From: Haliotis rubra
Taxonomy: Eukaryota
DNA length: 64,000 bases
Assembly: GCF_003918875.1 (NCBI RefSeq)
Contig: NW_025767469.1
Coordinates: forward strand, 124,001 to 188,000
Direction: 5' to 3'
Part shown: piece after piece, positions 3,813 through 56,802 of the stretch
How the letters are laid out: each line of letters begins with the position of its first letter
How positions within the stretch are numbered: position 1 is the first letter of the stretch
Notes under the pieces: generated by a model
Told to the model about the DNA's origin: nothing
The model's database searches: none
The model's input: the letters and a program-made list of their open reading frames with translations, nothing else
Program-made: the position numbers and the translations under genes

Positions 3813-4277
3813 ATGAAAATGGTTCCACTCTATCTATGTTTCGCTGTTGCAACGCTCTGGTTGACCACCTCTGACGCTCATTCTCCCCACGTCTGTGAGT
3901 ACTCAGGAGTTTCCTAATAGCTAAGTACATAGTACAGATACAATCTGGTCCAGCAGTCTGTGGTTTGTTTAAATCATTTATAGAGTGCACAACAAAGTTT
4001 ACACTTTTTGTAGGCAAGACAAGCTTATCTTTTTTGCCAACATTTGTGACTTTTATTCATTCATTCATTCATTCATTCATTCATTTGATCATTCAACCCG
4101 TGAAGATCCGGGTAAAAATTTATCTTCAGTAACCCATGCTTGTCGTAAGAGGCGACTAGCGGAATCGGGTGGTCAGGCTCGCTGACTTGGTTGACACATG
4201 TCATCGTATCCCAATTGCATAGATCGACGCTCATGCTGTTGAATGTCACTGGATTGTCTGGTCCAGATCATTTATTC

Positions 4278-4346
<69 letters not shown>

Positions 4347-7300
4347 GCACAAAATGTCCAAAATAGTATAGGTGTTCAATCATAAAATTACGTAGATAAT
4401 AAAACAGAATGCCTTTTTTTCTCCAACATGTTTCGTTCTTTACTGAAGAACCTGAAGAGTTCTCCCTGAAGAGTAAAGAACGAAGCGTGTTGGAGAAATA
4501 GGCATTCTGTTTTTATTTATCTACGTAATATATATATATTAAGTAACACCAAACATTGCCGTCGAGTGCGAGCTCATCTATGATCTAACAAGGGAAAGAA
4601 TAACATTGATTTTTTTTAAAAACTGTACCATTATGTTTGTCATAACATACCGAGGGTATTCCTAGTTAGAACTGGTCCCGAGAAACTTTACCCCAAGCGA
4701 CATAACGGGTAGGGAAGTCAGACAATGTGATTTGTTTGACAGCATTTTAACGACGTGCTCATTATATCAACCACTGGATTGTCTGGCCAAGACTCGATTT
4801 TTGCACGCTGGACTGTTGCTGAATGCGGTTTTAAAGAACAAGCGTATTCATTTAAGGGGTCTAGAGAATGGGTCATTCCATCCCGTTAGTCGCACGGGTT
4901 GCTGAAAAACAACTCTCAACCCGATCTTCATGGTTCTGATAATCAGTGCTTCATAAACGTGATAATTAGTGATTCATAAACACATGATTACGACGTACAG
5001 TGGAGATAGCTATATATATGCACCTTTTTTACAGTGATCGGTAGCCAATATTACCGTTATCAAGCAGGTGATATAGATATAGAGAGGTTATGGGGATAAT
5101 TGACGTATGATGGCAGATTGGTGTTCAGACAACACATGAGGTTGTAACAAAGACCTTCTTGATCCATAGGGGGGCGGTGGGATAGACTAGTGGTCACGCC
5201 GAAGACCCGGGTTCGATTCCCCACATGGGCAAAATGTGTGAAGCCCATTTTGGTGTCCCCCCGCCTTGATATTGCTGGAATATTGCTAAAAGCGGCGTAA
5301 AATCAAACTCACTCAATCACTCTAGATCCATAGAGTTGTCTCTCTTGTACACCATGCCAACTTCTAAATGTTCAAGAACTTAATCAGGATATATCGGAAT
5401 AGTGTAAGATTCTCAGCTATTAGTCGGGGGTTTCTCATGGTTATTAAGATGGTGTCGTATTTCGTCTTGCGTTGAGTGTAGTCAGCTATCGTGGAACAAA
5501 GGGTATTAAAATATATAAGGTATGTATTTCAAAGTTCTTTTCCAAATAACTTCGGGCGAACATTGTAACTCAGTATTGCAGTATGGTTACAGAGTGAGTG
5601 AGTAAGTGAGTGAGTGAGTGAGTTGGGTTTTACGCCGTTATTAGCAATATACTAGCAATATCACGGACGAGTGAACGCTTTAACCACTGAGCTACCCCGC
5701 CTCCCCTACGAGCCCGCCTCCGCGGTGTAGTAGTGGTTAAACGAGACCGCCTCCGCGGTGTAGTGGTTAGAGCGTCCGCTAGTACAAGCAGCCGCACATA
5801 CACATACACACGCATGCACGTCGTCATATGAGCGAAATATTCTCAAGCACGACGTAAAACCCAATTTCACCTCACCTCACCTCCCATACGATTACAGATA
5901 TAGCATCACCACATTTGTATGTATATGTTACCAGATTATATGGACGCAGAGTGCGGGTCCAGTATAAGTGTCACGAATGATGTGAGAGTGCAGCTGGCGA
6001 CCAACACCCACCTTCTCCCCAACTGGACATGCTCCACAAGTCTGGAGGCGCATACAGACGGTGACCAGTTGCTGGTCCGGATCAGAAATCTAAACACATC
6101 ACCGTCTGTTGACTGCAGTGAAAACAGTTTGAAGATAATCGATACTGACGAACACATAGATATAAACGGTTAGTCCTACATTAAGCCCATATTTAAGCCA
6201 TGTTTGCGACGTTGGTGTAGTTGAACTACAATTGATTACATTGGCTATAATCACAGCAAAATCTAATTGTACTTGTTTCTTCTTTAACGCCAAATTTAAC
6301 AATCCAGTGATTGACATCATGAGCATCGATCTACGCAACTGGGACACGATGACATGCGTCAACAAAGTCAGCAAGCCTGGCCATCCCATGACGTTAGTCA
6401 CCTCATGCGACAAGCAGAGGTTGCTGAAGGTCTGTTTCCAACCGGATCTCCATCGGTGCCTATTCGTATGGAATTAGGTGAACAGTATAATGGCCTGATC
6501 TGGGTCAACTTAGGGTGGTGTTACTTTGTCGATAATTTGAAATAATCCACTTCTGTACAATTAAACATCTTCCGCTTTTTAAATATTAAATCACTGCAAG
6601 TGGCTACTCTATTCTCGTCCATGCGGGAGTTTTACTGCACGGTGTCAAACTAAACATCCAATAATTCCTATTACACACTAATTATGTGGTTGCCGGTTGC
6701 ATCAATACTGGAGGTTGAAAAAACAGTCCACTTTCTGTGACCCTGTTGTAATTATCGTAGCAAAATGATTACTTCCAGATTAACAAACTTATTCGCTTGA
6801 AATTGCCATTGAATAATTATCACGTCTATTTTTGGACAAATGCATGGTTTTATTGGATTGCCATTTGACTGAAATTTATTTACCGCTCTTCGAGAATTTC
6901 ATACATCGACTGACGCCACGACAGATCTGCAGTAAACATGCACTTCCTGTTGATTTGTGAAAGGGAGATAACCGTGAGAAACGGAGATAACCGTGAAAAA
7001 CGGAGATAACCATGAAATTCGTTTATAGATACGATTCCTGAACACACTAAAGTCCTAATTATGTTAAAACAGTGGTGGGTTTGGAAGATATGGGTGAGAC
7101 CTTACACCCCTTCGTGTATCCCACGAATACCTGGGGTTTTGAAAAGCCTCAATTCTCTCTGAAGGCATGAAAGAAATCTTTGATCGGGATTTCGAATCCA
7201 TGTTTGTCCTGATTATGTTTCCAGGCCTGTCAACAACAAACACTATTGGTTTCACCCTGTTGGGTGCCGTTGTACAAAGCGATCTTAACGCTAATGTGAT

Positions 7301-10300
7301 CGTAACTCCCGTACCTAAACATAGACTTACGACTGTCGCTAAGGCTGCTTGTACAACAGCACCCTGCTTTATTTAGATCGTTCCTCTCTCCACATATCAT
7401 CCCCTTTACAGGGCGATGGGGTAGCCTAGTGGTTAAAGCGTGCGCTCGTCACGCCGAAGACCCGGGTTCGAATCCCCACATGGGTACAATGTGTGAAGCC
7501 CATTTCTGGTGTTCCCCGCCGTGATGTTGCTGGAATATTGCTAAAAGCGGCGTCAAACTAAACTCAGTCAGTCAGTCAGTCCCCTTTACACTACACCTCC
7601 GTTGTTCCAGGAGAGCACGGGGACTGTGGTTCCACACCACCAGTAAGGACTTTTGTCACCAATGGAAGTTCAGTGACGTTTGTGTTCAACACAGATGGCG
7701 CGAACCAGGATGGCCAGTTCGACATCCTCGTGACATCCTTCAGTCTATCTATCAATGGTACGTGCATGTTTGGATATCAATAAAATTTCAACTAGATAAG
7801 ATGATACGTTATGGCCAGTTTGGTGTGTTCCCGTTTTCTCATATCCCAAACCAATCAAATTCAACAAACAAACATATATATGAAACATTTCAAGTTTCTC
7901 TTAAGGACTCATCTGTTCCGTTTGTACTTTAAAAGTGACCTTGTACTGCCACCAAGTTTTTACTTTTCCTTGACTCTTGCATGCTCTGTGAGCACGCCTC
8001 ATTTGAGTTTAGCGCAATATAAATGGACATTACATTACTTACATATATTCAATGATATTTTTCTTTGAAACTGAAGGTGTCATCACTGTTTTTCTTAGAT
8101 CCATTCATATAATTTTAAACACTATTTTGTCGTTTAGGACTAAGAACTATGTTTCAAAAGATAATTGAGGAAGATTACATTCTGGCATTAACACTCTGGC
8201 ATTAACAATTTATCGGTCTGCCGTGGGGATGCTAACTGACCATTTCAACAAAAACTGACGTACAAATGAAAGTACACACCTGATGCTTTGGTGACATGTT
8301 TTCCTTAATACAGCGTAATATTTAGAAAAGTGTTTTGATTGTGACTCAAACATTGTGTACGTGTTGCAATAACACCATAGATATCGTACCCAATTGGAAC
8401 ATTGCCAACAAAATATCGACGTTTTTTAAGAGTCTCAAACCACCAGGTGTGTACTTTCTTTTGTACTTCAGTATATTTATGTGTTATAATTCATTTGCCC
8501 GAAAAAGATTGAAATAGTCTCTGATAACAGTGTGTAAGATTATATCATAATTATTCAAATATCAAATGAATTACGTTAGTTCAGGTACGCTGTATATGTA
8601 TGTATTGCACGATTATCTAGAAATGAAGCCAGGGTTCGGATATTTCTATTTGAATATCTTATGTAAATATGCTATGATAAAAGATGAGTTCTTCAAATCT
8701 ACATTAACGTATTCAACCTTTATTCGTGGTACTGAATCATCAGAAATGTCTATACAGGTACGTGCTCCAGTGATCGCTTCCTGTGCGATAACAGCCGGTG
8801 TGTGAGCTGGAGCGTCGCCTGTAACGGCTTCAACGACTGTGGCGACAACAGTGATGAACTCGACGTTTGTGGTATTGGGGTGGCCGCCATAAGTGGAATA
8901 GCCGTGGGATCGTTTGTGTGCTTCGTCATATTGCTGCTTATCATCATCAGTAGAGTAAGACGGAAGCGCTTCAGAAGACGTCAGGTAAATGTCTGGAACT
9001 GTCTTGGAGTGGTCGGATGAGTGAGTGGATGCGTGGGAGGGGGAATATGTGGGTAAGGGAGTGAGTAACTCGTTGAATAGATGAAATGGTGGACGGTTGA
9101 ACGAATGGCTGAGTGGCTGAACGAGTGGGTGAGTGGTAGGATGGGTTGATGGGTGGTAGGATTGGTGGGTGAGTAGTCGGGTGGGTGAGTGGGTGAGTAC
9201 TCAGATTGGGTGGTAGGGTGAGTGAGTGAGTGGCTGAATGAGTAGGTGAGTGGTAGGATGGGTTGGTGGGTGGTAGGATTGGTGGGTGAGTGGTCGGATG
9301 GGTGAGTGGATGAGTACTTAGATTGGGTCGTAGGGTGAGTGAGTGAGTGGCTAGATGGGTGGGTGAGTGGTAGGATGGGTTGGTGGGTGGTAGGATTGGG
9401 GGGTGAGTGGTCGGATGGGTGAGTGGGTGAGTACTTAGACTGGGTGGTAGGGTGAGTGAGTGAGTGGCTAGATAGGTCGGTAAGGGAGTGAGTGACTGGT
9501 TGGATAGGTGAATGGGCGGGTGGGTGGGTTGTAGGATGGGTGGGGAGTGAATGGGTGGGCATAATGGCAAGTAGGTTCATACTATTCTTCTCTGCAATCA
9601 ACATTACTCTAGCTATTTCCCCGTCGTAGCAAGGGAAACAGGTGGTTAATGTCATGAGCACAGAACCATACTGTCCGGGTACATGACAGTTTGTCCAGGG
9701 GACAAATGTTCTGGACCACAATCTGACCAGTTAATGGAAGGGACTTGGCAAACATACATACGTTTGAAGATTTCAGCCATGGGGTTTTTCACATGTTCCA
9801 CGACGACGTACGACCGGCAGGGCATGTCATGTTACCCTTTGAGCGAACACCTGGTGTCATAACTGATATCCAGAGATCCACTCATATAAACTACGTCCAA
9901 TGCAATCTGTTTCGATAGGTGTTCGATACTGGTCATTTTCCAGCGTTTAAGTTTTATATACATGTAAAAGTATTTAACTTCATACTACGAGGGCCGGTGG
10001 GGTAGCCCATTTCTGGTGTTCTTCGCCGTGATATTGCTGGAATATTGCTAANNNNNNNNNNNNNNNNNNNNNNNNNNNNNNNNNNNNNNNNNNNNNNNNN
10101 NNNNNNNNNNNNNNNNNNNNNNNNNNNNNNNNNNNNNNNNNNNNNNNNNNNNNNNNNNNNNNNNNNNNNNNNNNNNNNNNNNNNNNNNNNNNNNNNNNNN
10201 NNNNNNNNNNNNNNNNNNNNNNNNNNNNNNNNNNNNNNGACCGAACTGTTGCAGGCCAGAAGATCAACGGATGTCCAGACCAAGCCTGGATACGGAACCT

Positions 10301-10314
10301 TATTTAACGGATAA
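3813..10314 (+). CDS. Gene A: signal peptide-CUB-LDLa-TM type I membrane protein, about 249 aa, 5 coding exons
   Basis: join(3813-3894,5935-6168,7611-7757,8758-8984,10255-10314). All introns GT-AG, phases 1,1,1,0; 750 nt open. [22 protein letters not shown] signal; [38 protein letters not shown] (CUB-like, 4 Cys); [36 protein letters not shown] (LDLa); TM; [11 protein letters not shown]|[19 protein letters not shown]. The last exon lies just after the N gap. Confidence 0.88.
4096..4270 (+). mobile_element. SINE-B (family without a tRNA head), 3'-truncated at (TA)n
   Basis: Starts ACCCGTGAAGATCCGGGT; contains CATGCTTGTCGTAAGAGGCGACTA. Confidence 0.85.
4279..4345. repeat. (TA)n microsatellite
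   Basis: Seen directly. Confidence 0.98.
4387..4529. mobile_element. Tiny palindromic Penelope-derived remnant with a hammerhead-like motif at 4460-4497
   Basis: About 57-bp inverted arms; TTCTCC-CTGAAGA-GTAAAGAAC-GAAGCGTGTT-GGAGAA. The opposite arm retains GAAACATGTT. Flanked by (TA)n. Confidence 0.6.
5169..5322 (+). mobile_element. SINE-A
   Basis: Family match; TSD gatccatag. Confidence 0.88.
5710..5885 (+). mobile_element. SINE-C, internally deleted, with a duplicated head
   Basis: Head CCGCCTCCGCGGTGTAGTGGTT occurs twice and joins directly to the 3' part; ends about 50 bp upstream of gene A exon 2. Confidence 0.75.
7262..7364. mobile_element. Short palindromic MITE; related copy at about 48368-48470
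   Basis: GGGTGCCGTTGTACAAAGCGATCTTA...TAAGGCTGCTTGTACAACAGCACCC. Confidence 0.6.
7411..7580 (+). mobile_element. SINE-A
   Basis: Family match; TSD tcccctttaca; ends about 30 bp before gene A exon 3. Confidence 0.92.
7880..8040 (+). mobile_element. L2/CR1-like LINE 3' end
   Basis: [11 protein letters not shown]-terminal motif followed by a GCGCAATATAAAT and (CATTA)n-like tail. Confidence 0.5.
9007..9560. repeat. G/T-rich compound tandem repeat (about 112-bp period, built from GAGT/GGGT units), gene A intron 4
   Basis: Repeated GAGTACTTAGA..GGGTGGTAGGGTGAGTGAGTGAGTGGCT..GGTAGGATGGGTTGGTGGG. Confidence 0.9.
10052..10238. other. Assembly gap (N run) inside intron 4 of gene A
   Basis: Run of Ns, beginning within a SINE-A fragment. 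Confidence 1.
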
Positions 10315-14200: not shown

Positions 14201-15956
14201 CATTGATGCATTTTTCGAAGCTAAATATGAAATATACGTGATGTAATAGGCGTCTCAATACCGGCCTTCGCGAAACGTGATTTTGTAAACACTATCCAAT
14301 ATGGCGGAAAGCGTGTAAGTGTATTTTCGAAAACATCCCAACCGATTCTAGATTCATCGGCAACGTTTCAGAATTATCATTAGCGATTTCATGTAAAAGT
14401 GATATCAGTGTTCATTAATATGTTATTTTTTAAATTCAATACTCCCAGTAATTATCCGATTTTCACATTACAAAACATATAGCAAATAACGCTGTGAATC
14501 GCGATTTCGTACTGTGTCAGAAATGGCGACATCTTCGATGAAGCCTATTTTGAAAAGTCATTTTCAGCACTTGGGCTTTGTCTAAAATAATAGTGGATGG
14601 TATCAAGAAACAGGAAATTTCCCGCAGAATTCGAAACTGTGAAGTGTATTTGTGTGCGTGGGATATTTTGATTTTTTATTGGACTTGAAATTGAGGGTTG
14701 AAGGGGAAGGACATATATGTCCCTGTTGCATCCAGGGGGTAAACGTCGGATGACGTTAGGGGTGATTCGCTGCCACTCATCCTAGAGACAATGTTCCAAT
14801 TGTTGGAGGTTGGCTGGGGGCGCAGGGCGTTTTCTGATTTTCCGATTGAGGTGATCCTATATGTGCTCAATGGGATTCAAATCCGGTGAACACGCTGGCC
14901 ATGGCAAAACCTGTATGTTGGCAAGGAAGTTCTGGGTCAATCTTGCCGTATGAGGCCTAGCGTTATCGTGCTGGAACACGATTCCTCCTGGATGCTGTTG
15001 GGCGAATGGCTGCACGACTGGTCGTAAAACCTCATCCTGGTAACGCTGTGCATTCAGGTTCCCCCCGAATAATGACGAGCCTCGTTTTCACATCACCGCA
15101 GATACCTCCCCACACCATTACACCTGCGCCTCCAAATGCATGGACTTGCTGGATGCAGTTCGGCGCCAAACGTTCACGAACTCTTCGGTATACTCGCTGC
15201 CGACCATCGTTCTTGTAAAGGCAAAACCGGCTTTCGTCCGAAAACAAGACACGTGCCCAGTTTCGACGTTGCCACCGCCGAACACGCCTGGCCCATATCA
15301 ATCGGTTGACTCTGTTTTGACGTGTCAGGTAGACTCCGCGGTAGGGGCGACGTGCACGGATACCATGTGCCTGCAGTCTCCTGTAGACGGTTTGTCGACT
15401 GATCCGGTGTCCCATTCCCGTCGCCGCCGTTAACGTCGCAGGGACGAAGCGGTTACGTAGGTGAAGTAACCGGATGTGGTTGTCTTGAATAGGCGTGGTC
15501 ACCCGGGGGTCTCCCGCTTCTCGGCCTGTCTGTTGTTCGGCCTGTTTGACGCAACTGTCGCATTAACCTGGTAACGGTTATGCGCGCGCATCCAAACGTT
15601 CTTGCTACAGCGGCGTGTGATGCTCCCTGTCGGACCATTCCAACGGCTCTTTCTCTCTCGATCGCTGTCAAACATGCCATTTCTTTTGTGTGCTTTTTAC
15701 TGCTGTGGGCACAACGTGTCGGACCAGCGGTTTTATACAGTTCATCTGCACGTGCATTTCGTGCTACACGACTTAACGTCATTTTGAGTATTCGTGCGAT
15801 TGCTTCTTAAGTGAATAAATGTTACCGGTTTTTTCGATCGAATACGTTTGGTTAGGAACGTGGGATACACAGAAATATGTTTTTTCTCCAAAAAGTATCA
15901 TTAATTTAAAAATATTTAAAAAAAATATTTGGTATCGTTTCTTTTGGACATGAGTT
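11266..15956 (-). mobile_element. Tc1/mariner DNA transposon with a pseudogenised transposase, interrupted by a 3.2 kb insertion
   Basis: 27-bp TIRs AACTAGTGTCCAAAAGAAACGATACCA / AACTCATGTCCAAAAGAAACGATACCA, each flanked by TA. Transposase starts at ATG 15680 (MACLTAIERERAVGM..RSGRP), with FSDESRF, FQHDNARPH and SPDLNPIE motifs plus frameshifts and stops. The C-terminal AAGGHTRY* is displaced to about 11522-11548. Confidence 0.92.
11554..14738. mobile_element. Non-autonomous TIR element (CCCCTGG...CCAGGGG ends, possibly piggyBac-like) nested in the Tc1 transposase
   Basis: Ends CCCCTGGCTGC / GCATCCAGGGG with degenerate TTAA-like flanks. AT-rich interior with no convincing ORF. Splits the transposase near its C-terminus. 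Confidence 0.6.
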
Positions 15957-17876: not shown

Positions 17877-18767
17877 TGATTACAGTTAAACGGATTATGT
17901 TATGACGTCAATTTGTCATGACGTCACAATGCAACTATACAAATGTTGTGACGCGGCGTTGCCATGACGTCACATTGGCGGCTTTATATTGACAGTACTA
18001 GTAGCACAATGAAAACAAGTATAATTCAGACACATTGCGTTACCCATTTAACGATGGACACAATTCTTTGATGAAAAAGTTTTCTTTAGCTTTACGCTGC
18101 ATGGCGTCAGCAGTATTCATTTTATAGAAAGGGAATATTTTAAATTTTATTTCCTTTCCTGCTGCGCAATTGTCAATGTGAGCGCTTAAGGGGATGCACC
18201 TTGTTTTGGGGTCCTTAATCTGTTGTTTATGGACGCGCATTCTGTCCCTCAAGCACTCCGTTTGTCCAATGTATTCTTCATGACACCCTTGGCATATAAT
18301 AACATAAATAATATGTTTTGTGGAGCAGTCCATGTTAGAGCGTACATGAAATAATTGTTTCCTGTTTTTGAACTTTATACATGAAGTTTCAAGTATATAT
18401 TCACAAGTTCCACAATTTCCCCGTTTACATTTTGAGACACTGAATTCTGTAGGTTTAATACATGAGTCGAATGAAAGCAGCAGGAAAGGAAATAAAATTT
18501 AAAATATTCCCTTTCTATAAAATGAATACTGCTGACGCCATGCAGCGTAAAGCTAAAGAAAACTTTTTCATCAAAGAATTGTGTCCATCGTTAAATAGGT
18601 AACGCAATGTGTCTGAATTATACTTGTTTTCATTGTGCTACTAGTACTGTCAATATAAAGCTGCCAATGTGACGTCATGGCAACGCCGCGTCACAACATT
18701 TGTATACAGTTGCATTGTGACGTCATGACAAATTGACGTCATTACATAATCCGTTTAACTGTAATCA

Positions 18768-19225: not shown

Positions 19226-19574
19226 CGCTGTCTAATGTAAGCTGCCCCCTATGCTTCTAGCTTGTAGGGATTCCGAACCACGACTATAGGCCCCATTGAC
19301 CACTAATGTTTGTTGGGAAAAGGGACTAAGTGGTTCGGCTTAATCTGTTTGGGTAGCTGTTTGATTGCATGTTACCATACACTGTCGGTGTGGGTCGTCG
19401 CTCATAATATCACTCACTGGTTTGTCTAGTGCGGATCCTCTTAATAAAACTGGAATATTGTTCCGTTAAATCAAACTCACATGCTATCTTACTGTATTAC
19501 CCCAGTCTATTTCGTAAGAGACAAACATACAACAAGACATACAGTCACAGACCGACGGTTTGTGCGCTTGTTGT

Positions 19575-19783
19575 ATCACGCCACACAATATTACAGCTCT
19601 ATGGCGGTAAATATTCGAGTCTGGACAATCCAGTGATCAACAGCATGAACATCGATCAACGCAATTGGGTCAGGATGACATGTGTCAACCAAATCAGCGA
19701 GTCTGACCACCCGATCCCGTTAGTCGCCTCTTACGACAAGCATGGGTTGCTGAACACCAATTCTAACCCGGATTTTCACGGGT
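19575..19783 (-). mobile_element. SINE-B
   Basis: Family match. Confidence 0.82.
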
Positions 19784-20032: not shown

Positions 20033-21686
20033 ATGGCTTCCCCTCGTCTCATCATTACCGTGCTGATTCTCTGTGTCGTTAGTACATATGGCTACACACC
20101 AGCCACCTGTGAGTATATGTTTCCTTGTATGACTTACAGCGGCTACGTGTTAATAATTAGGGAGTGTATAGCCAGGAAATATGTACAAGCAACAACATTA
20201 TAATCAGGGAATGTGTATAACCTGTGGGCCTGCAAAATGAGGGAATGCGTATACTCGGGGAGGGTGTGTTACCAGAAAGTTTGTATAATCAGGGAATGGG
20301 TATAATCAGGGAGTGTGTATAATCAGCAGTATGTATAACAGAGTGAGTGGATGAGTTTGGTTTTACGCCGCTTTTAGCAATATTCCAGCAATATCACGGC
20401 GGGGGACACCAGAAATGGGCTTAACACATTGTACCCATGTGGGGATTCGAACCCGGGTCTTCGGCGTGACGAGCCAACGCTTTAACCACTAGGCTACCCC
20501 ACCGCCTGTATAAACAGAGAGTATGTATAATTAGGAATGTGTATCATCATAGAGTATGAATAATTAGGAATGTGTATGAGATAAGGATGACTGACTGACT
20601 GAGTTTAGTTTTACGCCGCATTTAGCAATTTTCCAGCAATATCACGGCGGGGGACACCAGAAATGGGCTTGACACATTGTGCCCATGCAGGGAATCGAAC
20701 CCGGGCCTTCGGCGTGACGAGCCAACGCTTTAACCACTAGGCTACCCCACCGCCCAGATAAGGATGAACAACTTCTTTATTCGGATGAGGCGACGTTTCG
20801 ATACAGATTCTTGCATCGTTGTCAAGCAAGTGAATGTGTATATCAAGGAGTATGTATATCTAGGAATGTGTATGATCAGGGGGTGTAATATTTAGGGGTG
20901 AGTGAGTGAGTTTAGTTTTACGCCGCACTCAGCAATACTCCAGCTATATGGTGGCAGTCTAAAATAATCGACACAGGATCAGACAATTCAGGGATCAACA
21001 GCATGAACATCGATCTACGCAATTTGGATATTAGTTACCTCTTACAGGCATGGGTTACTGAAGATCAACTCTAACCCGGATCTTCACGGGTGTGATATTC
21101 AGGGAATGTTTATAGTCAGAGAAGATCTCTTTTAATCAGGGATTGTGCAGAATCAGGTTATATGTGTAACCAGAGGTTGTGGGGCGCGGTGGGCGAGCTG
21201 GCTAAGGCGCCAGGCTAGTGATCCAGCGAGGTTGATGTGTCGGGATCGAGCCCACCTGTGACCGGGTGTAAAAAACCTTGGAGTCAACTTTGTGTGCAGA
21301 CTCTTCCAGTGTTGTCACAACCCCTAGTGTACAGTACACAACCCTGTGCACATAAAAGAACCCACGAATCCGTTGGTATTAGACCAGGTGGTGGCCACAT
21401 GAATACATGCAAACACCTAGTTGCGGGTACAGCAACGTGCAGTGAACATGGACAAAGTACTGTGACTCTGTGTCCCAGTCCACCCAGCTGTGAATGGGTA
21501 CCTCGTTAGGATGAGAAAGCCACAATAACTTGGTGCGCCTAGTGGCTGCAAGAGTTGTATACTCCCCAAGGAGCTCAAGCTGATAATGCCATGTGCCGTT
21601 GAGATTGACATCCAATGATCGAGGTAAAAAATACCAGCGCCTTGAGCATGCACTAGTGCGTGGATATGTGCGCTATATAAATATCC

Positions 21687-21717
<31 letters not shown>

Positions 21718-25973: not shown

Positions 25974-25997
25974 TACTGGCACCAACACACAGCCATA

Positions 25998-26165: not shown

Positions 26166-26270
26166 CTTACAGCCATAAACTTAATACTTGATCAATTGAT
26201 ACTAATACCAACACTGTGAAACTACGGCCACGACCTTCATACCAGACCTGCTGGTACTTATACCAACAAG

Positions 26271-33110: not shown

Positions 33111-33141
33111 TAAAGGGTTAAAAGGACCAGGGTTCGCGGTA

Positions 33142-40141: not shown

Positions 40142-43100
40142 TTATTGGATCTCCTTGTACTGGGAACGTCCTCTCCTCCTCCTTCTGATGACGACAATGA
40201 CGGCGGCCACGGTGACGAGACAAAGTATACCTCCGAGAGAGATGATGAGAATCTCAAAAATGCTCGGTCGGCACGCAACGGTTTCATCGGAATTGTCGCC
40301 ACAATCGTTATAGCTGTTACAGATGACATCATTTGAAACGCAGTTGTCGTTGCTGCAGTGGTACTCGTGATGACCACAAAAACCTGAAGAGTGTAACACA
40401 GTGTAACATAGTGTAACGGTTACATTTCATTATCAGTTATATTAATATCAACGATATAAATCTATAATGCGTGGTTATCGAATATTTCATTATATATGTT
40501 TGGGGGTCAAGGATAGCCCAGTTGTCAAAGGCGCGGAAATTAGCTGTACAGAGTTCAGTAACTTGGGCTCTCCCTATACCTCTCTGTGCGTGCGAATTCT
40601 AACGAGAAATGTCGCCGCCAATATTTCTCAGATTGTTCCAACAATACCCTGACCGTGGTCAATGTAAGTTGTAAATGACAATGCGGAAAGAATAAACATG
40701 CCTCAGTTATCTGGAGATTTCATTCAATTTGGATGTCAATATCAAATTATTGATGAACGTTATATGAGTAGGTCACTGAAAATCTATAACGACACATGGT
40801 GTTCGTAAATAATATTAAGACGCGTGTATCTATGTAACTATGTATGTATCTAACGAACCAAACAGCTGATTCTTGTTTTGAATAAATCAATAAAATGGCG
40901 ACAAAGAATTCGTTTATTCCAATAGCTCAGAAAAAATCGAAACGTCAAAAGAGAGTATAGTTTTAAATTATCATCATTCCAGCTACATGACCGCGATGAA
41001 TCTAGAAATGTTTCATGGATTTTTCCATGCGGGAATAAAACCCTGACCTTCAGTGTGACTAGCAAACACTTTAACCACCCAGCTACCAATCCGCTTCAAT
41101 GCCACCACGCTGTCAATGAATTACAGTTGACATAATTGTACACCAAAAGAATGTTATTAATTACTTTAATTAGATGTCTCGAACTACAAAAAAAACGATA
41201 TATATTTTGACATCAGGACTGACTGAATTGCAGAATGAATATTGTAATAGTTAACGAAAAAAGACATCAGCTTTGAATGAATGGAGCATCGTCTTACCAT
41301 CTTTAGCGAGTCTGAATGAAGATACGAGAAACTTGAACCCCCCTGGTTCCGTCACCCCCTCGTCCTTCTGGTACTCCCACCAGGAGTACACCCCCGAGGT
41401 GTTCAGCGTGGGTCGAGACAGGTGCTGGCCACATATCCAGGGAGGGTCTGGAATAGAACATTATTAAGTGAATGTTATTTAACGCCGTTGGTTGTCAACA
41501 GTAAAATCCAAGCAGTATCAGGACGAACAAGGGGGATAATTAGACCGTGGATGCAATGTGTGAGGCCCATTACTGGTGTCCCCTGCCGTGGTATTGCTGG
41601 AATATTGCTAAAACGGCGTACAACTAACTCATTCACTAACATTCAAGCTCATTCAAGTAATAGTCATGAATAATTTTCGTTTTCATCACATTGCGGATTT
41701 CATGGATGCCATATGAAAAATCAAACTTACCTGTAAGTCTTTACTACAACAGAGAAGATCTATTTCTCCACTTACTATTACAGCCTTTACTATGATGGAG
41801 AAGGCATTTCTCCACTTACCAGCAACTCTTTATTATAACGGAGAAAACGACATATTTCTTCCACTTACCTTTAACTCTGTATTATAATGGAGAGAACGAC
41901 ATATTTCTTCCACTTACCTTTAACTCTTTATTATAACGGAGAAAACGACATATTTCTTCCACTTGCTAACTCTTTATTATAATGGAGAAGACGACATATT
42001 TCTTCCAATTACCAGTAACTCTTTATTATAATGGAGAAAACGACATATTTCTTCCACTTACCTTTAACTCTTTATTATAATGGAGAAAACGACATGTTTC
42101 TTCCACTTGCTAACTTTTTATTATAATGGAGAAAACGACATATTTCTTCCACTTACCTTTAACTCTTTTTAATGATGGAGAAAACGACATATTTCTTCCA
42201 CTTACCTTTAACTCTTTATTATGATGGAGAAAACGACATATTTCTTCCACTTACCTTTAACTCTTTATTATAATGGAGAAAACGACATATTTCTTCCACT
42301 TGCTAACTTTTTATTATAATGGAGAAAACGACATATTTCTTCCACTTACCTTTAACTCTTTATTATGATGGAGAAAACGACATATTTCTTCCACTTACCT
42401 TTAACTCTTTATTATAATGGAGAAAACGACATATTTCTTCCACTTGCTAACTTTTTATTATAATGGAGAAAACGACATATTTCTTCCACTTACCTTTAAC
42501 TCTTTATTATGATGGAGAAAACGACATATTTCTTCCACTTACCTTTAACTCTTTATTATAATGGAGAAAACGACATGTTTCTTCCACTTGCTTACTCTTT
42601 ATTATAATGGAGAAAACGACATATTTCTTCCACTTGCTAACTTTTTATTATAATGGAGAAAACGACATATTTCTTCCACTTACCTTTAACTCTTTATTAT
42701 GATGGAGAAAACGACATATTTCTTCCACTTACCTTTAACTCTTTATTATAATGGAGAAAACGACATATTTCTTCCACTTGCTAACTTTTTATTATAATGG
42801 AGAAAACGACATATTTCTTCCACTTACCTTTAACTCTTTATTATGATGGAGAAAACGACATATTTCTTCCACTTACCTTTAACTCTTTATTATGATGGAG
42901 AAAACGACATATTTCTTCCACTTACCTTTAACTCTTTATTATAATGGAGAAAACGACATGTTTCTTCCACTTGCTAACTTTTTATTATAATGGAGAAAAC
43001 GACATATTTCTTCCACTTACCTTTAACTCTTTTTTATGATGGAGAAAACGACATATTTCTTCCACTTACCTTTAACTCTTTATTATAATGGAGATAAAGG

Positions 43101-46100
43101 ACATATTTCTTCCACTTACCTTTAACTCTTTATTATAATGGAGAAAACGACATATTTCTTCCACTTGCTAACTTTTTATTATAATGGAGAAAACGACATA
43201 TTTCTTCCACTTACCTTTAACTCTTTATTATGATGGAGAAAACGACATATTTCTTCCACTTACCTTTAACTCTTTATTATAATGGAGAAAACGACATATT
43301 TCTTCCACTTACCTTTAACTCTTTATTATAATGGAGAAAACGACATATTTCTTCCACTTGCAAACTTTTTATTATAATGGAGAAAACGACATATTTCTTC
43401 CACTTACCTTTAACTCTTTATTATAATGGAGAAAACGACATATTTCTTCCACTTACCTTTAACTCTTTATTATAATGGAGAAAACGACATATTTCTTCCA
43501 CTTACCTTTAACTCTTTATTATAATGGAGAAAACGACTTATTTCTTCCAATTACCTTTAACTCTTTATTATAATGGAGAAAACGACATATTTCTCCCACT
43601 TACCAGTAGCTCTTTATTATAATGGAGAAAACGACATATTTCTTCCACTTACCTTTAACTCTTTATTATAATGGAGAAAACGACATATTTCTTCCACTTA
43701 CCTTTAACTTTTATTATAATGGAGAAAACGACATATTTCTTCCACTTTAACTTTTTATTATAATGGAGAAAACGACATATTTCTTCCACTTACCTTTAAC
43801 TCTTTATTATAATGGAGAAAACGACATATTTCTTCCACTTACCTTTAACTCTTTATTATAATGGAGAAAACGACATATTTCTTCCACTTACCAGTAACTC
43901 TTTATTATTATGAAGAAAACGACATATTTCTCCCACTTACCTTTAACTCTTTATTATAATGGAGAAAACGACGTATTTCTCCCACTTACCAGTAACTCTT
44001 TATTATAATGGAGAAAACGACATATTTCTTCCACTTACCTTTAACTCTTTATTATAATGGAGAAAACGACATATTTCTTCCACTTACCTTTAACTCTTTA
44101 TTATAATGGAGAAAACGACATATTTCTTCCACTTACCTTTAACTCTTTATTATAATGGAGAAAACGACATGTTTCTTCCACTTACCTTTAACTCTTTATT
44201 ACCAAGGAGAAGACAACACGGACATTCTTCTCCACTTATGAAGTCTTCACTACAATGGAGACGACTGACATATTTCTCCACTTACCATTTCTGTGTTATA
44301 CTGGAGAAGAGTGAGATATTTCTCCCCTTAACCATTGAGTGGTTACCATGGAGAAGATATATTTCTTCACTTACTGTTAAGCGGTTGAGCATCGGAGTTG
44401 AGGATGTTCAATGACGTCTCGTTACAGGGGTAACTCGTTGTTATATTAAGATGAAGTGGGGTTATCAGGAGTCGCTGTGATAACTCCTCCGTCATGACGA
44501 CAACGTTACACGACATCGCCGACCAATCCGCCTCGGTAGTGTTCTCTGTGAAATCCAGCAGCATGTCTTTGGTGAACGTTATCGTCTTGCCACATTCCTG
44601 GTCGAAATAAACTGGAATAAAACATATTTACAACAATATAAACAAGTATCATTGTATTATATAGTAAATCTCAGTGTGGATTGAGGAAACTTTATTTGTT
44701 TGCTTAACGCCGCGCTTGTGTATAAACAGTGAACCAAATCATTGTGCCCGACAACCATGGTACTTGCATCTTACAGCAAGTTAGACGTCGAAGACCCGGG
44801 TTCGAATCCCCATGGGTGCAATGTGTGAAGCCCATTTCTGGTGTAACCCCGTTGTGATATTGCTGAAATATTGCTAAAAGCGGCGTAAAACCGTACTCAC
44901 TCACTCACTCATTCACTGCAGCATGATAGATGATAGGATCTAATCTAACCAGAATCCCGATGGACTTTGACAATTTGGTAAAAGCTACACGTGTTTGCTT
45001 GGATGTATAAGCATCTAAACCGTAGCTGCTTTGTTTTAGGTCCTTATTCATTGTCTCTGTGAATATACATTCCACTCTGCGGTAGATTATATTCTTTTTA
45101 ATACTGGCTCAAAATCTAAACCGCCCTTGTAGCTGTTGACATTAGGGAAATATACTCATGCCAATAATGGTTGTCACCCCCCTCACCACCCCAACCCCAC
45201 ACACACCCCACACCCACACCCCACACACCCTCACCAATAAAAAAAATTGAAGGGGGTGACAACCATTATTGGCATGAGTATATAAAGATCTTGTTAATAC
45301 GGCAAACGTGAGACAACAACACGTTTTGTGTTTTTGTCTTGACAAAGTAAATTTTCTGTTCTCCTTCAGACGTGGATACTTGATAGACACATTTACGTAA
45401 TTTCTTACTTTTTGACCAAAGTTGATATTTACCAACGATCATATACATTAACAAAGGTATGCCATAGATATGTATTTCTATGTTTGCGGTTGTTATTGAG
45501 TATTTGATGTCCGCAAAATTCATCGACATTATGAAATACTTATGATCTGTCTCTACGCAACCCTTCACAGCCACATGTGAGACAAGACGTCAGGAGACGG
45601 TGGATGATGTCATGTGTAGACATGGCAACTGTTACCGTCTGGTTAGTGAGTATAGATAAACTTAATGTACAGTAAGCTTCGGTTATGACGAACTCAAAAT
45701 TCGTTACAACTGAAATTCGTTGTGCTCATTCGACTAAAATATAGTAGCACGTGGCAGGGATAAAAAGACAGTTCCTTATTTAAGTCAGTTCGTAATAAGT
45801 GTATCCGTTTAAAATGTAGGACCTGGTTTACTGTAGTTCCAATGACATATATCTTAACCAGTCAAATCACAGCGAACTCGACGTGTTTCAATACCATTTG
45901 CATATTGCAGTGGAAGTAGGGGCGAACATACTAAGAATTATTTCATATATCAAGATATAACGATACAATGTTGAATACATATTGATAGGGTCCATCCACA
46001 TATTGCATGAGTGAGTGAGTTGGGGTCAAAGCCGCTTTGTGTAACAACACAGTTATATCGTCAGATTTCAGGCACTACTAAGAACAGTAACTCTGCACGT

Positions 46101-46280
46101 TTAATTGCAGTGCCTTGCGCCGCCGTGCCACCATAATCACTGGAAGCTCTGCGGACAACACGTGGCAGTAACGCATCAAATAATCCCAAAGTCATACTCA
46201 CATGTCGGTGGTGTGTAAGTACATCCCGCTAAATTATATAATGCGATGCAACTAAATAAAATGGCAATTATAGCAGCCAT
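40142..46280 (-). CDS. Gene D: signal peptide-CUB-LDLa-TM type I membrane protein, about 235 aa, 4 coding exons
   Basis: complement(join(40142-40383,41298-41447,44375-44611,46202-46280)); 708 nt open. MAAIIAILFSCIALYNLAGCTYTPPT|FYFDQECGKTITFTKDMLL..|NPPWICG..FKFLVSSF..|[54 protein letters not shown]. Confidence 0.9.
41750..44372. repeat. 49/46-bp minisatellite, about 50 copies, filling most of gene D intron 2
   Basis: Unit GGAGAAAACGACATATTTCTTCCACTTACCTTTAACTCTTTATTATAAT plus a 46-bp variant (..CCACTTGCTAACT..); degenerate at both edges. Confidence 0.97.
45670..45833. mobile_element. Degenerate pogo/Tigger-like MITE
   Basis: TA-CAGTAA...TTACTG-TA ends with GTTCGT-type subterminal repeats. 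Confidence 0.4.
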
Positions 46281-46532: not shown

Positions 46533-47838
46533 TAGTATGACCAGAAATTATTGAGAATTTTAGGAATGTGTTTAATTGGATTTCTAGTATAAACAACCTT
46601 GACCAGCTATCAAGCTAGTGCTTGGTTTCATTCAAGAGAGACAACTCCGTTAATCCTTTTTCATTAGTTTGTGAAGAGTTATCCGTCTTTGTTTACTTGC
46701 TAGCAGGCGACATTTTGAGTGATCATCAGTATGGATGATTCAGAGAAGAGGAAGTTGATTTTAGAGTATTATAACAAGGACATCAGATCAGCTAAAGTGA
46801 TTTCAAGTAGAACAGGCATTCCCTTGTCCACTGTTTATCGTGTTTTGAAAAATATTGCAAATGGATATGGCACTGAGCACCAGGGAGGCGCAGGTAGGCC
46901 CAGAAAATTGACTGTCGGTGACAGGAGGCGGCTTGGTATTCTTGTTTCTAAAAACAAACGAAGGGGTTTAGAAAACTTAAGGCTGGATGTGATTAATAAA
47001 GGAACTGTGGCTGTCTGTAAGGAGACAATTAGAACTGAGCTGCATGCAATGGGTTGGCAGAAAAGTCGAGGAATTCCATCACCGATCATGAAACCTGAAC
47101 AAAAGGAGCGAAGGTTGAACTGGTGCTTACAGCATAGAAATTTTAACTGGGACAATGTGATTTTCTCAGATGAAAGTTCTGTGTGGCTGTTTCCTAATAC
47201 CCTGAAATTCTGGACCAAACAAACTGAAAAACCTTTGTATCAGCGCCCAAAGTACAGTCCGAAATTTAACGTGTGGGGTTGCATATCTGTGTTAGGGGCA
47301 ACGCCCCTCTGTGTATTTGAAGGGAATATGAACAGTGAGCGGTACACAGATATTCTCGAGGGACATTTAGTTCCATCTGCTCACGTGTTCTATGGAAAAA
47401 TTTTGATTTTCCAGCAGGACAAAGACCCAAAACATCGTTCAAACCATTCACAGGCCTGGTTTCGGACCCAAAATATGACATTATTAGATTGGCCAAGCTA
47501 TAGCCCTGACCTTAATCCAACAGAAAATGTTTTGGGGACTTATGAAGTTAAGTGTCAATAGGAAAAATGCTGACAAATATTGCTGAAATGAAAGAAGAGG
47601 TGGTCCGATATTGGGACAGCATGGACCACGACTTTCTAACTTCCTTGATCAGTAGTATGCCCCGCCGCATTGAAGCCTGCACTGCTGCCCATGGTGACTT
47701 GACAAAATACTAACTATTCACCTGTCTTTGAATCTGGAGTTATGTTCTGCTAATATTCACATTTAATACGTGAGTAATGAGTGAAAAAAAATTAAAAAAT
47801 TGCAATCTTTAAATTCTCAGTAATTTCTGGTTGTACTG
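46533..47838 (+). mobile_element. Tc1 (DD34E) transposon, nearly full length
   Basis: TA-flanked 28-bp imperfect TIRs (TAGTATGACCAGAAATTATTGAGAATTT / CAGTACAACCAGAAATTACTGAGAATTT) enclosing a transposase. Confidence 0.93.
46731..47713 (+). pseudogene. Tc1 transposase with two +1 frameshifts near the C-terminus
   Basis: HTH region, GRPRKL, FSDES, FQQD-34 aa-E (SPDLNPTE). The continuation NVWGLMK..SMPRRIEACTAAHGDLTKY* is recovered after removing one base from a T5 run (about 47530) and one from an A5 run (about 47563). Confidence 0.88.
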
Positions 47839-51270: not shown

Positions 51271-51443
51271 TGGGCGGTGGGGTAGCCTAGTGGTTAAAGC
51301 GTTCGCTCGTCACGCCGAAGACTCGGGTTCGAATCCCCACATGGGTACAATGTGTGAAGCCCATTTCTGGTGTCCCTCGCCGTGATATTGCTGGAATATT
51401 GCTAAAAGCGGCGTAAAACCATACTCACTCACTCGCTCACTCA
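51271..51443 (+). mobile_element. SINE-A
   Basis: Family match. Confidence 0.9.
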
Positions 51444-53050: not shown

Positions 53051-56000
53051 ATGAACAAAATGGAGCTTTACGTAAACATGATGGTGATTGTGATGATTGG
53101 CACGTGTGGGGTCAGTGTGGCTCAGATGTATACACCAACGACTTGTAAGTACTGTTTCACCATTTGTTTAGCATTTATGAGTTACACTGAAGCCAGGAGA
53201 GTGCGATACGTGCTTTACATGAAACGCCAGCTACGTTTACTAAAATGTCACGTAAATGATCGCTCGAACGGACGAATTAATGAAACCCTTTCTATATACA
53301 TCAGAGTGTGTGAGTGACGTTTTACGCTGCTTTTAGCAATATTCCAGCAATATCACGGTAGGGGACACCAGAAATGGGCTTCACACATTGTACCCATGTG
53401 GGGAATCGAACCCGGGTCTTCGACATGACGAATGAACTCTTTAACCACTAGGCTACCCCACCGCCCGCAGATGTTTTTGCATATAGATATCCCGGCCCGA
53501 GGGTGGCATCTGTCACAAATACATGCAAAGGCAAGTCAATTATTCATAATACTCAATGACATTACATATCTATTGTTTTTACATAGGATATCTTTATTTA
53601 GAGACACTTGGCAACACAACCCCACCTTACATTTTGGGTCATATCGGTCGATTTTAACTGTGTCACCTTTTTTCGTTTGTCGGTTATGCTTTTGTATATT
53701 TCATCGTTTATGTTTTTAATTTATCACTTATGTCACATATTTTACCGTTCATGCTTCGAGTTGACGTTTTACATATAAAGGCAAGAGTTTATGGATGTCA
53801 ACTTCTATAGTTTGAGGTGAAAGACGTTTCTGAGTAAATTCTCGCAATGAACAAGTAAGAATATACTCAATATGTTCAAAATAAAGAAGTTGATTCTTGC
53901 CTTTATGTTAATACTTTAACCTTTAATTTTTATCCTCTGACCTTATTTTTATCCCAAATGAATTCAAGTACATTAAATATCGCTGACGTTAAGGAGACTG
54001 TTTAATATTGCCATTTTATCCTATATCCCTCCAGTTGAGATGTTTGAGGAGTGCGACAACAAGATCATTATATCGGAGGACATGCTGCTACAACTATCTG
54101 TGAACAAGACCAGGAGAAAAACACACACGTGTAGCACGACGGTTGAAAGTGACGTGGACGGCAATCGCTTGTTACTACGTTTCCTGAATATGAACATCTC
54201 CGACAGGCCAGGATGCTTGAAAGCCAGGATCAGCTTATATGAGACAGAAGGCAAACATCCTTCAGGTAAGGCCACGAAGGACATATATTTGTTTGTCTTC
54301 CTCATGAGTGAGTGAGTGAGTTTAGTTTTACGCCGCACTCAGCAATATTCCAGCTATATGGCGGCGGTCTGTAAATAATCGAGTCTGGACCAGACAATCT
54401 AGTGATCAACAGCATGAGCATCGATCTGCGCAATTGGGAACCGATGACATTTGTCAACCAAGCCAGCGAGCCTGACCACCCGATCCCGTTAGTCGCATCT
54501 TACGACATGCATGGGTTACTGAAGGTTCATTCTAACCCGGACCTTCACGGGTCTCTTCCTCATGACGAACATAAAACATACACAACTGTAATTGCTGTGA
54601 AAAATGTGTCTAGTTATAATTTTGTTTTCAGTAAATTTTTGCGGCAATATGAGCATCCCCGTGTTCAACTCCAGCGGACAGTCAGTGAGGGTTAAGTACG
54701 AGACCAGTCGCCAGGACGAGGACGCCGCTCATGACGTCTTCACACTACTTATCTCATCTTTTCACGAGCAGGTGAAAGGTAAATAAAACAAACCTTCTCA
54801 CTCGTTACTATCTTCAGCACGAGCGTACGAGGTGATACATGGGATCGAGGTACCTCGTCAGGCTCCTTTATTTGGTATCTGAATGTCATCGTATTCCAGT
54901 TGTCCAGATACATGCTCGTGCTGTCAACCTCTGGTCGGTCTGGTCCGGACTCGATTTCTGACAGACCGCCCGTCATATAGCGAGAATATTGCTGATCAGC
55001 AGACCAGCGTTTGTTTTAGAGTTATTTTAAGGCGGGATGGCAGAAGGTTGAATTAATTTATTTATTTATTTATTTATTTTTATTTATTTATTTATTCAGG
55101 GGGAGTTTATACACAGAAATTATATAATAACCTCTAATCATTTCAGTTTTTCTTATACTTTTAAAATAACAATTGGCCCACAGTATATATCTGAGTCCGG
55201 GGAGTTGCATGAGTGAGTTTGGTTAGCAGCTGCTCTGAACAGTATTTCTAACATACAAGAGCGTGTCAACTTAGAGTAGCGTGACCCGACAAACGGAAGT
55301 GATGCACTTCTTTGAAATTTAACATATTGTGTAACCCACGAAAACGGGCATGGTTCTCACTAATCCAGATCCTAATAAGAACAAATCTAGCATTCAATCC
55401 ACGATGACAGGATTCTGGCCTGCCAAGGGGAGGCAACTCTGCATTGCGAATAGCGATGCCACGGACAGTTGGGCCACGGGCCCCATGTACAATCAGGAAA
55501 CAAACGTGGGACATGAAACATAAGAAGGTTTCCTTTACACAAACACCCGGTGTCAACACTGAATTTCATTGGTCTATTCACATAAACAGAAGAGCAAAGA
55601 AAACATACGTAGTTTATTATTTACATAATTATAAATTTGATTATATCTGTTTAGTTATCACTCATTCCTGGGACAATTTGTAAAAAGTAATCTTGGCTGG
55701 ATAATGTTATTGATTCAATGAAGGAATGAAATGATTTTGTAACTACATAAATCCATGTTCGATTTTTTTTTAAATCTGCGCCGAAAAGGGAACATTTATT
55801 GAGTTTCCACGGAATGATGTCTAAGATACCCATCTGCAGTTGTAGATCACACGAAATATATTTTATCGAATTTTGAAAGTTCAAGATAAAATTATGCTTT
55901 AAAATCTAAGCCAAGAAGTATCCTTTGAGCAGTGTCGGATCGGGGGTGGGGGGTAGTGGTGGTTTGTCCCCCAGGGGGTTCGAACCCCCTCTTTTGAAAA

Positions 56001-56802
56001 TGACTTAAGACAACATTGAAAAATAAATAAATTGCGTTTACGGAGGGTTCAGGGGATTTTAACCCCCTGAACCCCCCACCCATCCACCCTTTTCAAAATT
56101 CCTTGTTCGCCCATGCCTTTGAGTGTTGAAGTATAGTAAATGAAATGGATATGCTCTCGCTAACTTAAGATATTGTAATTGGAAAATTGACGTATGATAC
56201 AATCAGCTAAGAGGTGTAGTTTCTTTTGCCTCTCAGTATAATTTCCACAGCTATTTTGCCGTTCGAAGAACCTGTTTCGTCTGATAAACGAGACTGGTTA
56301 TTCTCTAGCATTGACGGGGCGGTAGGGTAGCCTAATGACTAACGCGTTCGCTCGTCACGCCGAAGACCCGGGTTCGATTCCCCACATGGTACAATGTGTG
56401 AAGCCCATTTCTGGTGTCCCCCGACGTGATACTGCTGGAATATTGCTTAAAGCGGCGTAAATCTAAATTCACTCCCTCACTCACTCTGGTGTTTTTAGAT
56501 TTAACACCTGAGTCACTTAAAAGAATAATCTCTTTGTTTCAGGAGAGTGTACGTCCTACGACTTCACATGCAGCAACTCCCTCTGCATCGACAGCGACAT
56601 GACCTGTAACAACTACGACGATTGCTCCGATAATTCCGATGAGACGATTGGCTGTAGCACAACCGATGGAGACCAGTTGATGAAGAAGATTGTGATTGTG
56701 TCTGTAGCCTGTGGGATGTTTCTGTTCGCTGTTGTTTGTGTCTTCGCCTTTAAAATACACCGAGCCAGGAACAGAAGAGGGGCATATTTATCTGTTGACT
56801 AA
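53051..56802 (+). CDS. Gene E: signal peptide-CUB-LDLa-TM type I membrane protein, about 243 aa, 4 coding exons
   Basis: join(53051-53144,54035-54265,54632-54778,56543-56802); 732 nt open. The start could be a downstream in-frame ATG. MNKMELYVNMMVIVMIGTCGVSVAQMYTPTT|FEMFEECDNKIIISEDMLL..|VNFCG..FTLLISSF..|GECTSYDFTCSNSLCIDSDMTCNNYDDCSDNSDETIGC..TM..HRARNRRGAYLSVD*. Confidence 0.9.
53310..53467 (-). mobile_element. SINE-A (gene E intron 1)
   Basis: Family match. Confidence 0.88.
54306..54552 (-). mobile_element. SINE-B (gene E intron 2)
   Basis: TSD tcttcctcatga. Confidence 0.92.
56316..56486 (+). mobile_element. SINE-A (gene E intron 3)
   Basis: Family match. Confidence 0.88.

Follow-up and report, generated by a model that had tools for sequence, protein, structure and literature searches.

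The Haliotis rubra (blacklip abalone) window analysed here, that is, the whole 64-kb stretch of contig NW_025767469.1, which, judging from where gene 4 lies, corresponds to about 124001-188000 of record QXJH01000750.1, carries five intact paralogous CUB-LDLa genes (strands +, +, -, -, +). Each product has a signal peptide, a single CUB domain whose coding sequence is interrupted by a phase-1 intron, a single LDLa module, a transmembrane helix and a short tail. The genes make up part of a tandem array of paralogs that is conserved in abalone and, as judged from coding sequences compared between species, they are functional and under purifying selection. They belong to a family of CUB/LDLa single-pass proteins whose characterised members are NETO1/2, SOL-2, CULD and MIG-13, with LDLRAD2 as a look-alike. 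The public H. rubra annotation already includes calls for at least three of the five; no published description of this abalone cluster was found in a literature search, in agreement with the original prediction, made from the DNA letters alone, which knew of none.

Five multi-exon genes sharing one architecture

A motif scan of all stop-to-stop frames yielded exactly five LDLa-like exons with an adjoining hydrophobic stretch, in the frames at 8736-9017 (+), 25180-25437 (+), 33787-34059 (-), 40145-40426 (-) and 56521-56799 (+). Upstream of each of them, BLASTP among the frames identified exons encoding the N-terminal and the C-terminal half of a CUB domain, which matched the exons of the other genes. 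In these CUB-half and LDLa-transmembrane exons every acceptor is AG and every donor GT, and the three introns are of phase 1 and lie at homologous positions. Further upstream, each gene has one ATG exon that encodes a hydrophobic stretch and has a strong phase-1 donor (GTGAGT or GTAAGT); in four of the five genes this exon contains a Y/F-x-P-x-T motif, and in the products a short conserved Y-T-P-x-T motif stands between the signal peptide and CUB. The joined exons gave five uninterrupted proteins, with the ATG of gene 1 (3813) and the stop of gene 5 (56802) as outer limits. The claim of five intact spliced ORFs with the same architecture, intron positions and phases, and cysteines was therefore borne out by motif scan, Pfam, BLASTP and GT-AG, phase-1 introns; concerning the models themselves, those of genes 4 and 5 agree letter for letter with RefSeq H. 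rubra proteins (LOC124260141 and 'LRP12-like', respectively), whereas those of genes 1-3 had been proposed without a fifth coding exon.

The corrected products are predicted type I membrane proteins, 235-262 amino acids (aa) long, with several N-glycosylation sequons each. Gene 1 (3813-10314, +; 249 aa), whose H. asinina orthologue (P0038) is named 'LRP3-like', has coding exons at 3813-3894 (signal peptide), 5935-6168 (CUB N half), 7611-7757 (CUB C half), 8758-8984 (LDLa and transmembrane helix) and 10255-10314 (tail ...PGYGTLFNG). Gene 2 (20033-25973, +; 262 aa) consists of exons 20033-20108, 23316-23555, 23853-23999, 25196-25428 and 25881-25973 (tail ...QKPSYQTY), and its H. asinina orthologue is colinear. 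Gene 3 (33142-37230, -; 256 aa), with orthologues in H. asinina (P0001) and H. cracherodii (P0002), is encoded by exons 37140-37230, 35343-35579, 34444-34587, 33802-34034 and 33142-33207 (tail ...KSGYQNY). The two remaining genes have four coding exons each: 46202-46280, 44375-44611, 41298-41447 and 40142-40383 (tail ...RSQYKEIQ) in gene 4 (40142-46280, -; 235 aa; P0003), and 53051-53144, 54035-54265, 54632-54778 and 56543-56802 (tail ...RRGAYLSVD) in gene 5 (53051-56802, +; 243 aa; P0006).

The fifth coding exons of genes 1-3 (10255-10314, 25881-25973 and 33142-33207, respectively) follow a phase-0 GT donor located a few codons before the stop reached by read-through. The junctions of P0001 (256 aa) agree with the model of gene 3, but its C-terminus differs from that of the four-exon version, and the sequence of its tail lies 0.6 kb downstream of the LDLa-transmembrane exon, at 33142-33207. 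In the same way, the tail of P0038 matches 10255-10314 of gene 1. The fifth exons of genes 2 and 3 are further supported by the lengths of the H. asinina gene 2 orthologue (262 aa) and of the product of a called H. rubra gene with the span of gene 3 (256 aa), which equal the corrected ones.

Intron 4 of gene 1 (8985-10254) includes an assembly gap of 187 N (10052-10238), which is located past the stop of the four-exon model, has its end 16 nt upstream of the exon 5 acceptor and affects no coding sequence. Since the exon 4/exon 5 junction is of phase 0, the reading frame of gene 1 does not depend on the length of the gap. The H. asinina orthologue has five colinear exons and an intron 4 of 1067 nt, compared with ~1270 nt in H. 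rubra, estimated gap included; the proposed link between exons 4 and 5 rests on the scaffold join and on conserved synteny. Just upstream of the gap, in the same intron, G-rich tandem repeats with 40- and 117-nt units (GTGGGTGAGTGG...) occupy 9110-9548 and yield spurious minus-strand open reading frames (ORFs) of 199-246 aa, rich in proline, histidine and threonine.

Intron 2 of gene 4 contains a minisatellite of ~50 copies of a 49-nt unit (41806-44201; 92% matches). On the strand of gene 4 each unit contains AAAG/GTAAGTGGAAGAAAT, which closely resembles the donor junction of exon 2, TTAACA/GTAAGTGAAGAAAT, at 44375, so that the intron opens with dozens of decoy-like donor sites. This intron is ~2.9 kb long in H. 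rubra and 1.6 kb in H. asinina.

It could be argued that the models all belong, as exons, to one large multi-domain gene, or that they are non-functional copies or artefacts of prediction, and in favour of this is the fact that RNA runs were sought over genes 3 and 5 and none were found. The only two read sets with a sizeable share, examined at gene 3, are genomic DNA, as their contigs run through the introns, at ~2% divergence and without splice joints, and read sets with a small share look like reduced-representation DNA. Transcription and splice junctions thus have their basis in sequence conservation, in selection and in the match to RefSeq models. On the other hand, the genes lie on both strands, RefSeq calls separate genes, and the H. 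asinina coding sequences are intact, colinear and of the same length, with selection values typical of constraint (given below), making this explanation extremely improbable as a whole. A single large gene, in particular, is ruled out by the two-strand layout together with the start and signal peptide, transmembrane helix and stop that each gene possesses, and the original prediction had likewise regarded the genes as separate.

The CUB and LDLa domains

Domain assignments were evaluated by Pfam with gathering cut-offs of 21.4 bits for CUB (PF00431) and 24.1 bits for LDLa (PF00057); genes 1-3 were represented in the searches by single exons and by the orthologous H. asinina proteins. In all five LDLa exons Ldl_recept_a was matched with 33-45 bits (E 1e-8 to 1e-11), gene 5 scoring 31.8 bits as a whole protein, and the features of the module, six cysteines and the SDE motif (D-x-S-D-E calcium cage), are invariant in the five genes. 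Single exons, each encoding half a CUB domain, gave no Pfam CUB match, and neither did the whole protein of gene 4; by contrast, P0001, in which Pfam finds both domains, scored 29.1 bits, gene 5 23.7 and a relative from Gigantopelta 28.7, all above the cut-off, and the gene 1 orthologue, with 20.9 bits, is just under it. At E<=0.1, Pfam recognised CUB in 11 of 15 family members, gene 5 included, so that the Pfam search proposed with the original prediction supported both assignments.

A profile of the CUB region of the family, searched by HMMER against 1.8 billion proteins, gave 962 matches at E<=0.001; the best of the matches listed were mostly cubilin-like proteins, in which as many as 26 stretches matched, and a handful of short single-domain relatives also appeared among those listed. 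AlphaFold2 models of P0001 and gene 4 had a mean predicted local distance difference test (pLDDT) score of 74.8 and 81.0, respectively, with values of 85-95 in the CUB regions of both. When compared by Foldseek with solved CUB domains, they matched those of TSG-6, neuropilin, spermadhesin, C1r and MASP, with target-normalised template modelling scores (TM-scores) of 0.72-0.83 and E down to 1e-8. Because whole-protein Pfam matches, CUB-profile matches and the AlphaFold2/Foldseek comparison agree, we conclude that the first domain is a genuine, although divergent, CUB.

Among the paralogs, 30 of ~240 aligned positions are invariant, namely ten cysteines (four in CUB and six in LDLa) and 20 others. 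The four CUB cysteines, which presumably pair in two disulfides, are also conserved in all 15 aligned relatives. The models contain helices at residues 2-20 and ~197-237, and the predicted signal peptide and topology place the proteins in the signal peptide-CUB-LDLa-transmembrane-tail layout typical of CULD, MIG-13 and LDLRAD2. The LDLa module is ~4-12 residues from the transmembrane helix, which is followed by a basic stop-transfer stretch and a tail of 14-45 residues.

Orthologues, selection and age of the cluster

All five genes have 1:1 orthologues in H. asinina, where neither order nor orientation differs, and for genes 3-5 there is one in H. cracherodii as well, where synteny is again observed; identity is 76-89% and 69-79%, respectively. 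Within the window the paralogs share 28-46% identity overall, on average 33% in the CUB region and 51% in LDLa, with BLASTP E values of 1e-21 to 1e-70 against each other, well outside the range of chance.

The H. asinina coding sequences of the five genes are intact, equal in length and free of indels. By the Nei-Gojobori method, synonymous divergence (dS) between H. rubra and H. asinina is 0.27-0.42, about 0.35, and the ratio of nonsynonymous to synonymous divergence (dN/dS) is 0.31, 0.32, 0.24, 0.20 and 0.17 for genes 1 to 5, respectively. Pooled by region, as the original prediction had suggested doing for the domains, dN/dS is 0.29 for CUB, 0.09 for LDLa, 0.31 for the transmembrane region and 0.26 for the tails. 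Ratios of 0.17-0.32, together with intact coding sequences, argue against pseudogenes and against diversifying selection acting on whole genes: pseudogenes are ruled out by the indel-free sequences and dN/dS, and gene-wide positive selection by dN/dS. The idea of ectodomains that have diversified holds among paralogs, which are indeed divergent, but the orthologues reveal purifying selection rather than rapid diversification.

The cluster is larger than the five genes originally proposed, which are those contained in the window, and extends past both of its ends, with at least seven members in H. asinina and at least six in H. rubra. At 61650-61733 (+) we found the first coding exon of a sixth member (signal peptide MASCYGVTLLC...), the remainder of which lies past the window end; it is 61% identical to exon 1 of a 229-aa gene located downstream of the H. 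asinina gene 5 orthologue, which has CUB-like exons and a Pfam LDLa match. A further H. asinina member (249 aa) lies upstream of gene 1, at L004:1028-5335, with five coding exons and a tail ending in ...AYPSNMHYGY; its H. rubra counterpart, if present, would be to the left of the window. In H. cracherodii, two extra genes, P0053 (257 aa, CUB-LDLa-transmembrane) and P0158 (166 aa, CUB only; its H. rufescens counterpart is P0126), are interposed between the gene 2 and gene 3 orthologues. No remnants of them were found between genes 2 and 3 of the window (25973-33142), and the corresponding H. asinina interval of ~6 kb has no gene called within. The absence of P0053 and P0158 from H. rubra indicates that the cluster gains or loses members and that copy number varies among abalone species.

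Word-based homologue searches returned Haliotis orthologues only. Elsewhere, a single relative each was found in Gigantopelta aegis (253 aa) and Patella caerulea, and Saccostrea oysters have proteins with two CUB-LDLa units. No other family member lies within 10 kb of the Gigantopelta gene in either direction, which is little informative as the gene itself spans 17.6 kb. In a maximum-likelihood tree each orthologue group was supported with 100/100 and the separation of gastropods from the oyster units with 98/96; the order of duplications and the placement of Gigantopelta and Patella came out without resolution, and the tree gives no age for the expansion with respect to the gastropod radiation. 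Stem lengths are ~1.3 substitutions per site for the groups of genes 3, 4 and 5 and ~0.4 for genes 1 and 2, compared with a divergence of 0.1-0.3 within Haliotis, indicating that the duplications are far older than the genus crown. A recent expansion is ruled out by the 1:1 orthologues in H. asinina, the long stems and the relatives outside Haliotis. Therefore, of the locally expanded, lineage-specific family originally envisaged, the tandem family stands, but it is not recent, having 1:1 orthologues in H. asinina and relatives in Gigantopelta, Patella and oysters.

Comparison with known CUB/LDLa proteins

In terms of predicted shape, the nearest ESM Atlas clusters are of mollusc CUB+LDLa proteins, chordate LDLRAD2 and arthropod proteins. 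A mollusc 'CUB domain-containing protein' cluster (~304 aa, 53 members) aligned along the full length with a TM-score of 0.75 over 233 residues (features 0.95); the mollusc cluster carries CUB and LDLa and, like the arthropod ones, is uncharacterised and was compared as a cluster, by shape and features. Vertebrate LDLRAD2 (~272 aa) resembles the abalone proteins in predicted shape only (TM-score 0.60 over 185 residues, abalone query 22-221), over a span covering the CUB-like domain, LDLa and the start of the transmembrane helix. It is known as a single gene in vertebrates, as opposed to the abalone tandem cluster of at least seven divergent paralogs, and like the abalone genes it is without an established function. 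The original prediction had described the minimal CUB-LDLa-transmembrane layout as one of solitary genes (MIG-13, CULD): the layout stands, but by predicted shape it is widespread, in the mollusc, LDLRAD2 and arthropod clusters, and LDLRAD2 had not been mentioned.

Among the characterised proteins, modulation of glutamate receptors is the role of NETO and SOL-2, clearance of rhodopsin and TRPL that of CULD, and guidance of neuroblasts that of MIG-13. For both AlphaFold2 models, the best PDB match extending past the CUB domain was Neto2 (CUB2-LDLa-transmembrane) in GluK2 complexes, over 204-207 aligned columns. NETO1/NETO2, Drosophila Neto and C. elegans SOL-2 share with the abalone proteins the CUB-LDLa-transmembrane order with LDLa adjoining the membrane; however, NETO proteins have two CUB domains before LDLa and long cytoplasmic tails, whereas each abalone protein has a single CUB and a tail of 14-45 residues. 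Drosophila CULD (CG17352) is a single-pass protein that combines one CUB with one LDLa and acts in the endocytic traffic of the membrane proteins Rh1 and TRPL (PMC4732287), the type of role put forward below for the abalone proteins, but it is a solitary gene, enriched in photoreceptor cells, and not a cluster. C. elegans MIG-13, which acts in neuroblast migration, contains one CUB, one LDLa repeat and a transmembrane helix, and its cytoplasmic tail is rich in proline (PMC4528313). The abalone tails, instead, are basic and tyrosine-bearing. Vertebrate LRP12 and LRP3, at ~800 aa, comprise two CUB domains and five LDLa modules, a different architecture from that of the abalone proteins, with their 235-262 aa and one domain of each type. 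Since the distinguishing features of MIG-13 and of LRP12/LRP3 are lacking, the RefSeq names 'LRP12-like' and 'LRP3-like' reflect domain similarity only.

Tyrosine motifs in the tails and possible roles of the proteins

A tyrosine near the C-terminus forms a column kept across members whose tails otherwise fail to align. It is part of the YxxPhi-type motifs YGTL (gene 1), YKEI (gene 4) and YLSV (gene 5), and of YQTY in gene 2 and YQNY in gene 3, and the tail of the Gigantopelta relative, PPPSYQTY, contains PPxY. The tails of genes 4 and 5, of 14 residues, are reminiscent of the GYQTI tail of LAMP1 (PMC2199866).

These features suggest how the proteins might work. The compact, membrane-hugging CUB-LDLa ectodomain of each paralog would bind a different partner, most likely another protein of the same membrane, such as a channel, a receptor or a transporter, following the precedent of Neto2 with GluK2 and of CULD serving rhodopsin and TRPL, and the tyrosine motif in the tail would then steer the complex via clathrin-mediated endocytic or lysosomal sorting. 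We regard this escort role, with a cis membrane partner for each paralog and tyrosine-based sorting, as a plausible but tentative interpretation, and a cis membrane partner is only weakly favoured over a soluble ligand. Old paralogs, each under purifying selection, point to a long-standing division of labour rather than to an arms-race repertoire.

If the partners were soluble, the paralogs could be small endocytic cargo receptors ('mini-LRPs'), each capturing a different ligand via CUB and LDLa and taking it up by means of the tyrosine motif, in line with the endocytic or recognition repertoire envisaged in the original prediction. Both domains are ligand-binding modules in cubilin and LRPs, the acidic calcium cage of LDLa is intact in all five genes, the C-terminal YxxPhi of genes 1, 4 and 5 would suit uptake, and RefSeq uses LRP12-like and LRP3-like as names for two members. 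Nevertheless, the abalone proteins have a single LDLa flush with the membrane, unlike classical LDLR-family receptors, where arrays are held off it, and their CUB domains are without the canonical calcium triad found in the ligand binding of cubilin, C1s and MASP. Moreover, in the LDLa lysine-binding pocket known from LA-module structures, the first Asp is replaced by Asn and one further acidic position by Phe/Tyr. Overall, a cargo receptor role seems rather unlikely.

The tail tyrosines might, alternatively, be phosphorylated (e.g., as pYxN) in guidance or adhesion-type signalling receptors similar to C. elegans MIG-13, with which the signal peptide-CUB-LDLa-transmembrane layout is shared (PMC4528313), and YQN does occur in the tail of gene 3 in three species and in H. 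asinina gene 2. However, tails of 14-45 residues that are not proline-rich, unlike that of MIG-13, and that are without kinase-docking or other signalling domains, and the resemblance of the 14-residue tails of genes 4 and 5 to sorting tails, render such a role very doubtful.

Returning to the escort of a membrane partner, several observations weigh against it. In the HMMER alignments to cubilin and C1r the canonical Glu/Asp/Asp triad of calcium-binding CUB domains (cubilin, C1r/C1s, MASP and PCPE type), a site on which many ligand-binding CUB domains rely, is not preserved: Thr/Ile stands in place of Glu and Asn/Thr/Ala in place of the first Asp, and the last Asp is retained only in genes 1-4. 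The lack of RNA runs over genes 3 and 5 mentioned above counts here too. A canonical YxxPhi is present in just three of the five genes, and short motifs of this kind easily arise by chance; the YQN of gene 3 also fits a Grb2-type pYxN, so that the tail could signal, not sort. Finally, the likeness to Neto2 is architectural, at 14-18% identity, and is not proof of a shared function.

Repeats and transposon remnants in the window

The window is AT-rich, with a GC content of 0.35-0.44. Short interspersed repeats and remnants of transposons abound in it, and for this reason an ORF track shows only fragments of the genes. Two families of repeats resembling short interspersed nuclear elements (SINE-like) fill introns and intergenic DNA and are the source of many short ORFs, their copies being 60-97% identical when translated. 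One family is found, e.g., at 4076-4267, 19408-19782, 26170-26502, 27653-27835, 32472-32675 and 54375-54692, the other, e.g., at 2845-2967, 7430-7558, 20366-20488, 51291-51413 and 53325-53447. Two intergenic remnants of Tc1/mariner-type transposases were identified, at 46719-47558 (+), a 280-aa frame with HTH_Tnp_Tc3_2 and DDE_3, and at 15035-15782 (-), split over two frames. A 97-aa frame at 18043-18333 (-) with a GIY-YIG nuclease domain (E 1e-6) is probably the remnant of a Penelope-like or similar element.

Significance of the cluster

Apart from its composition, this is an ordinary tandem gene family, with no sign of a new mechanism. On the other hand, few single-pass CUB/LDLa proteins exist and those studied have notable roles, so that at least seven divergent minimal members offer a set of natural variants for asking how CUB-LDLa pairs achieve recognition and how short tails direct sorting. 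As a broader and more speculative proposal, which we consider unlikely, gastropods would have retained an ancient, multiplied series of NETO/CULD-like escort subunits of minimal build, each with its own channel, receptor or transporter, in which the tyrosine tail would set the residence of the complex at the cell surface. If this were true, abalone would possess a repertoire of auxiliary subunits without a described counterpart in model animals, and its study might provide a clue to the function of LDLRAD2.

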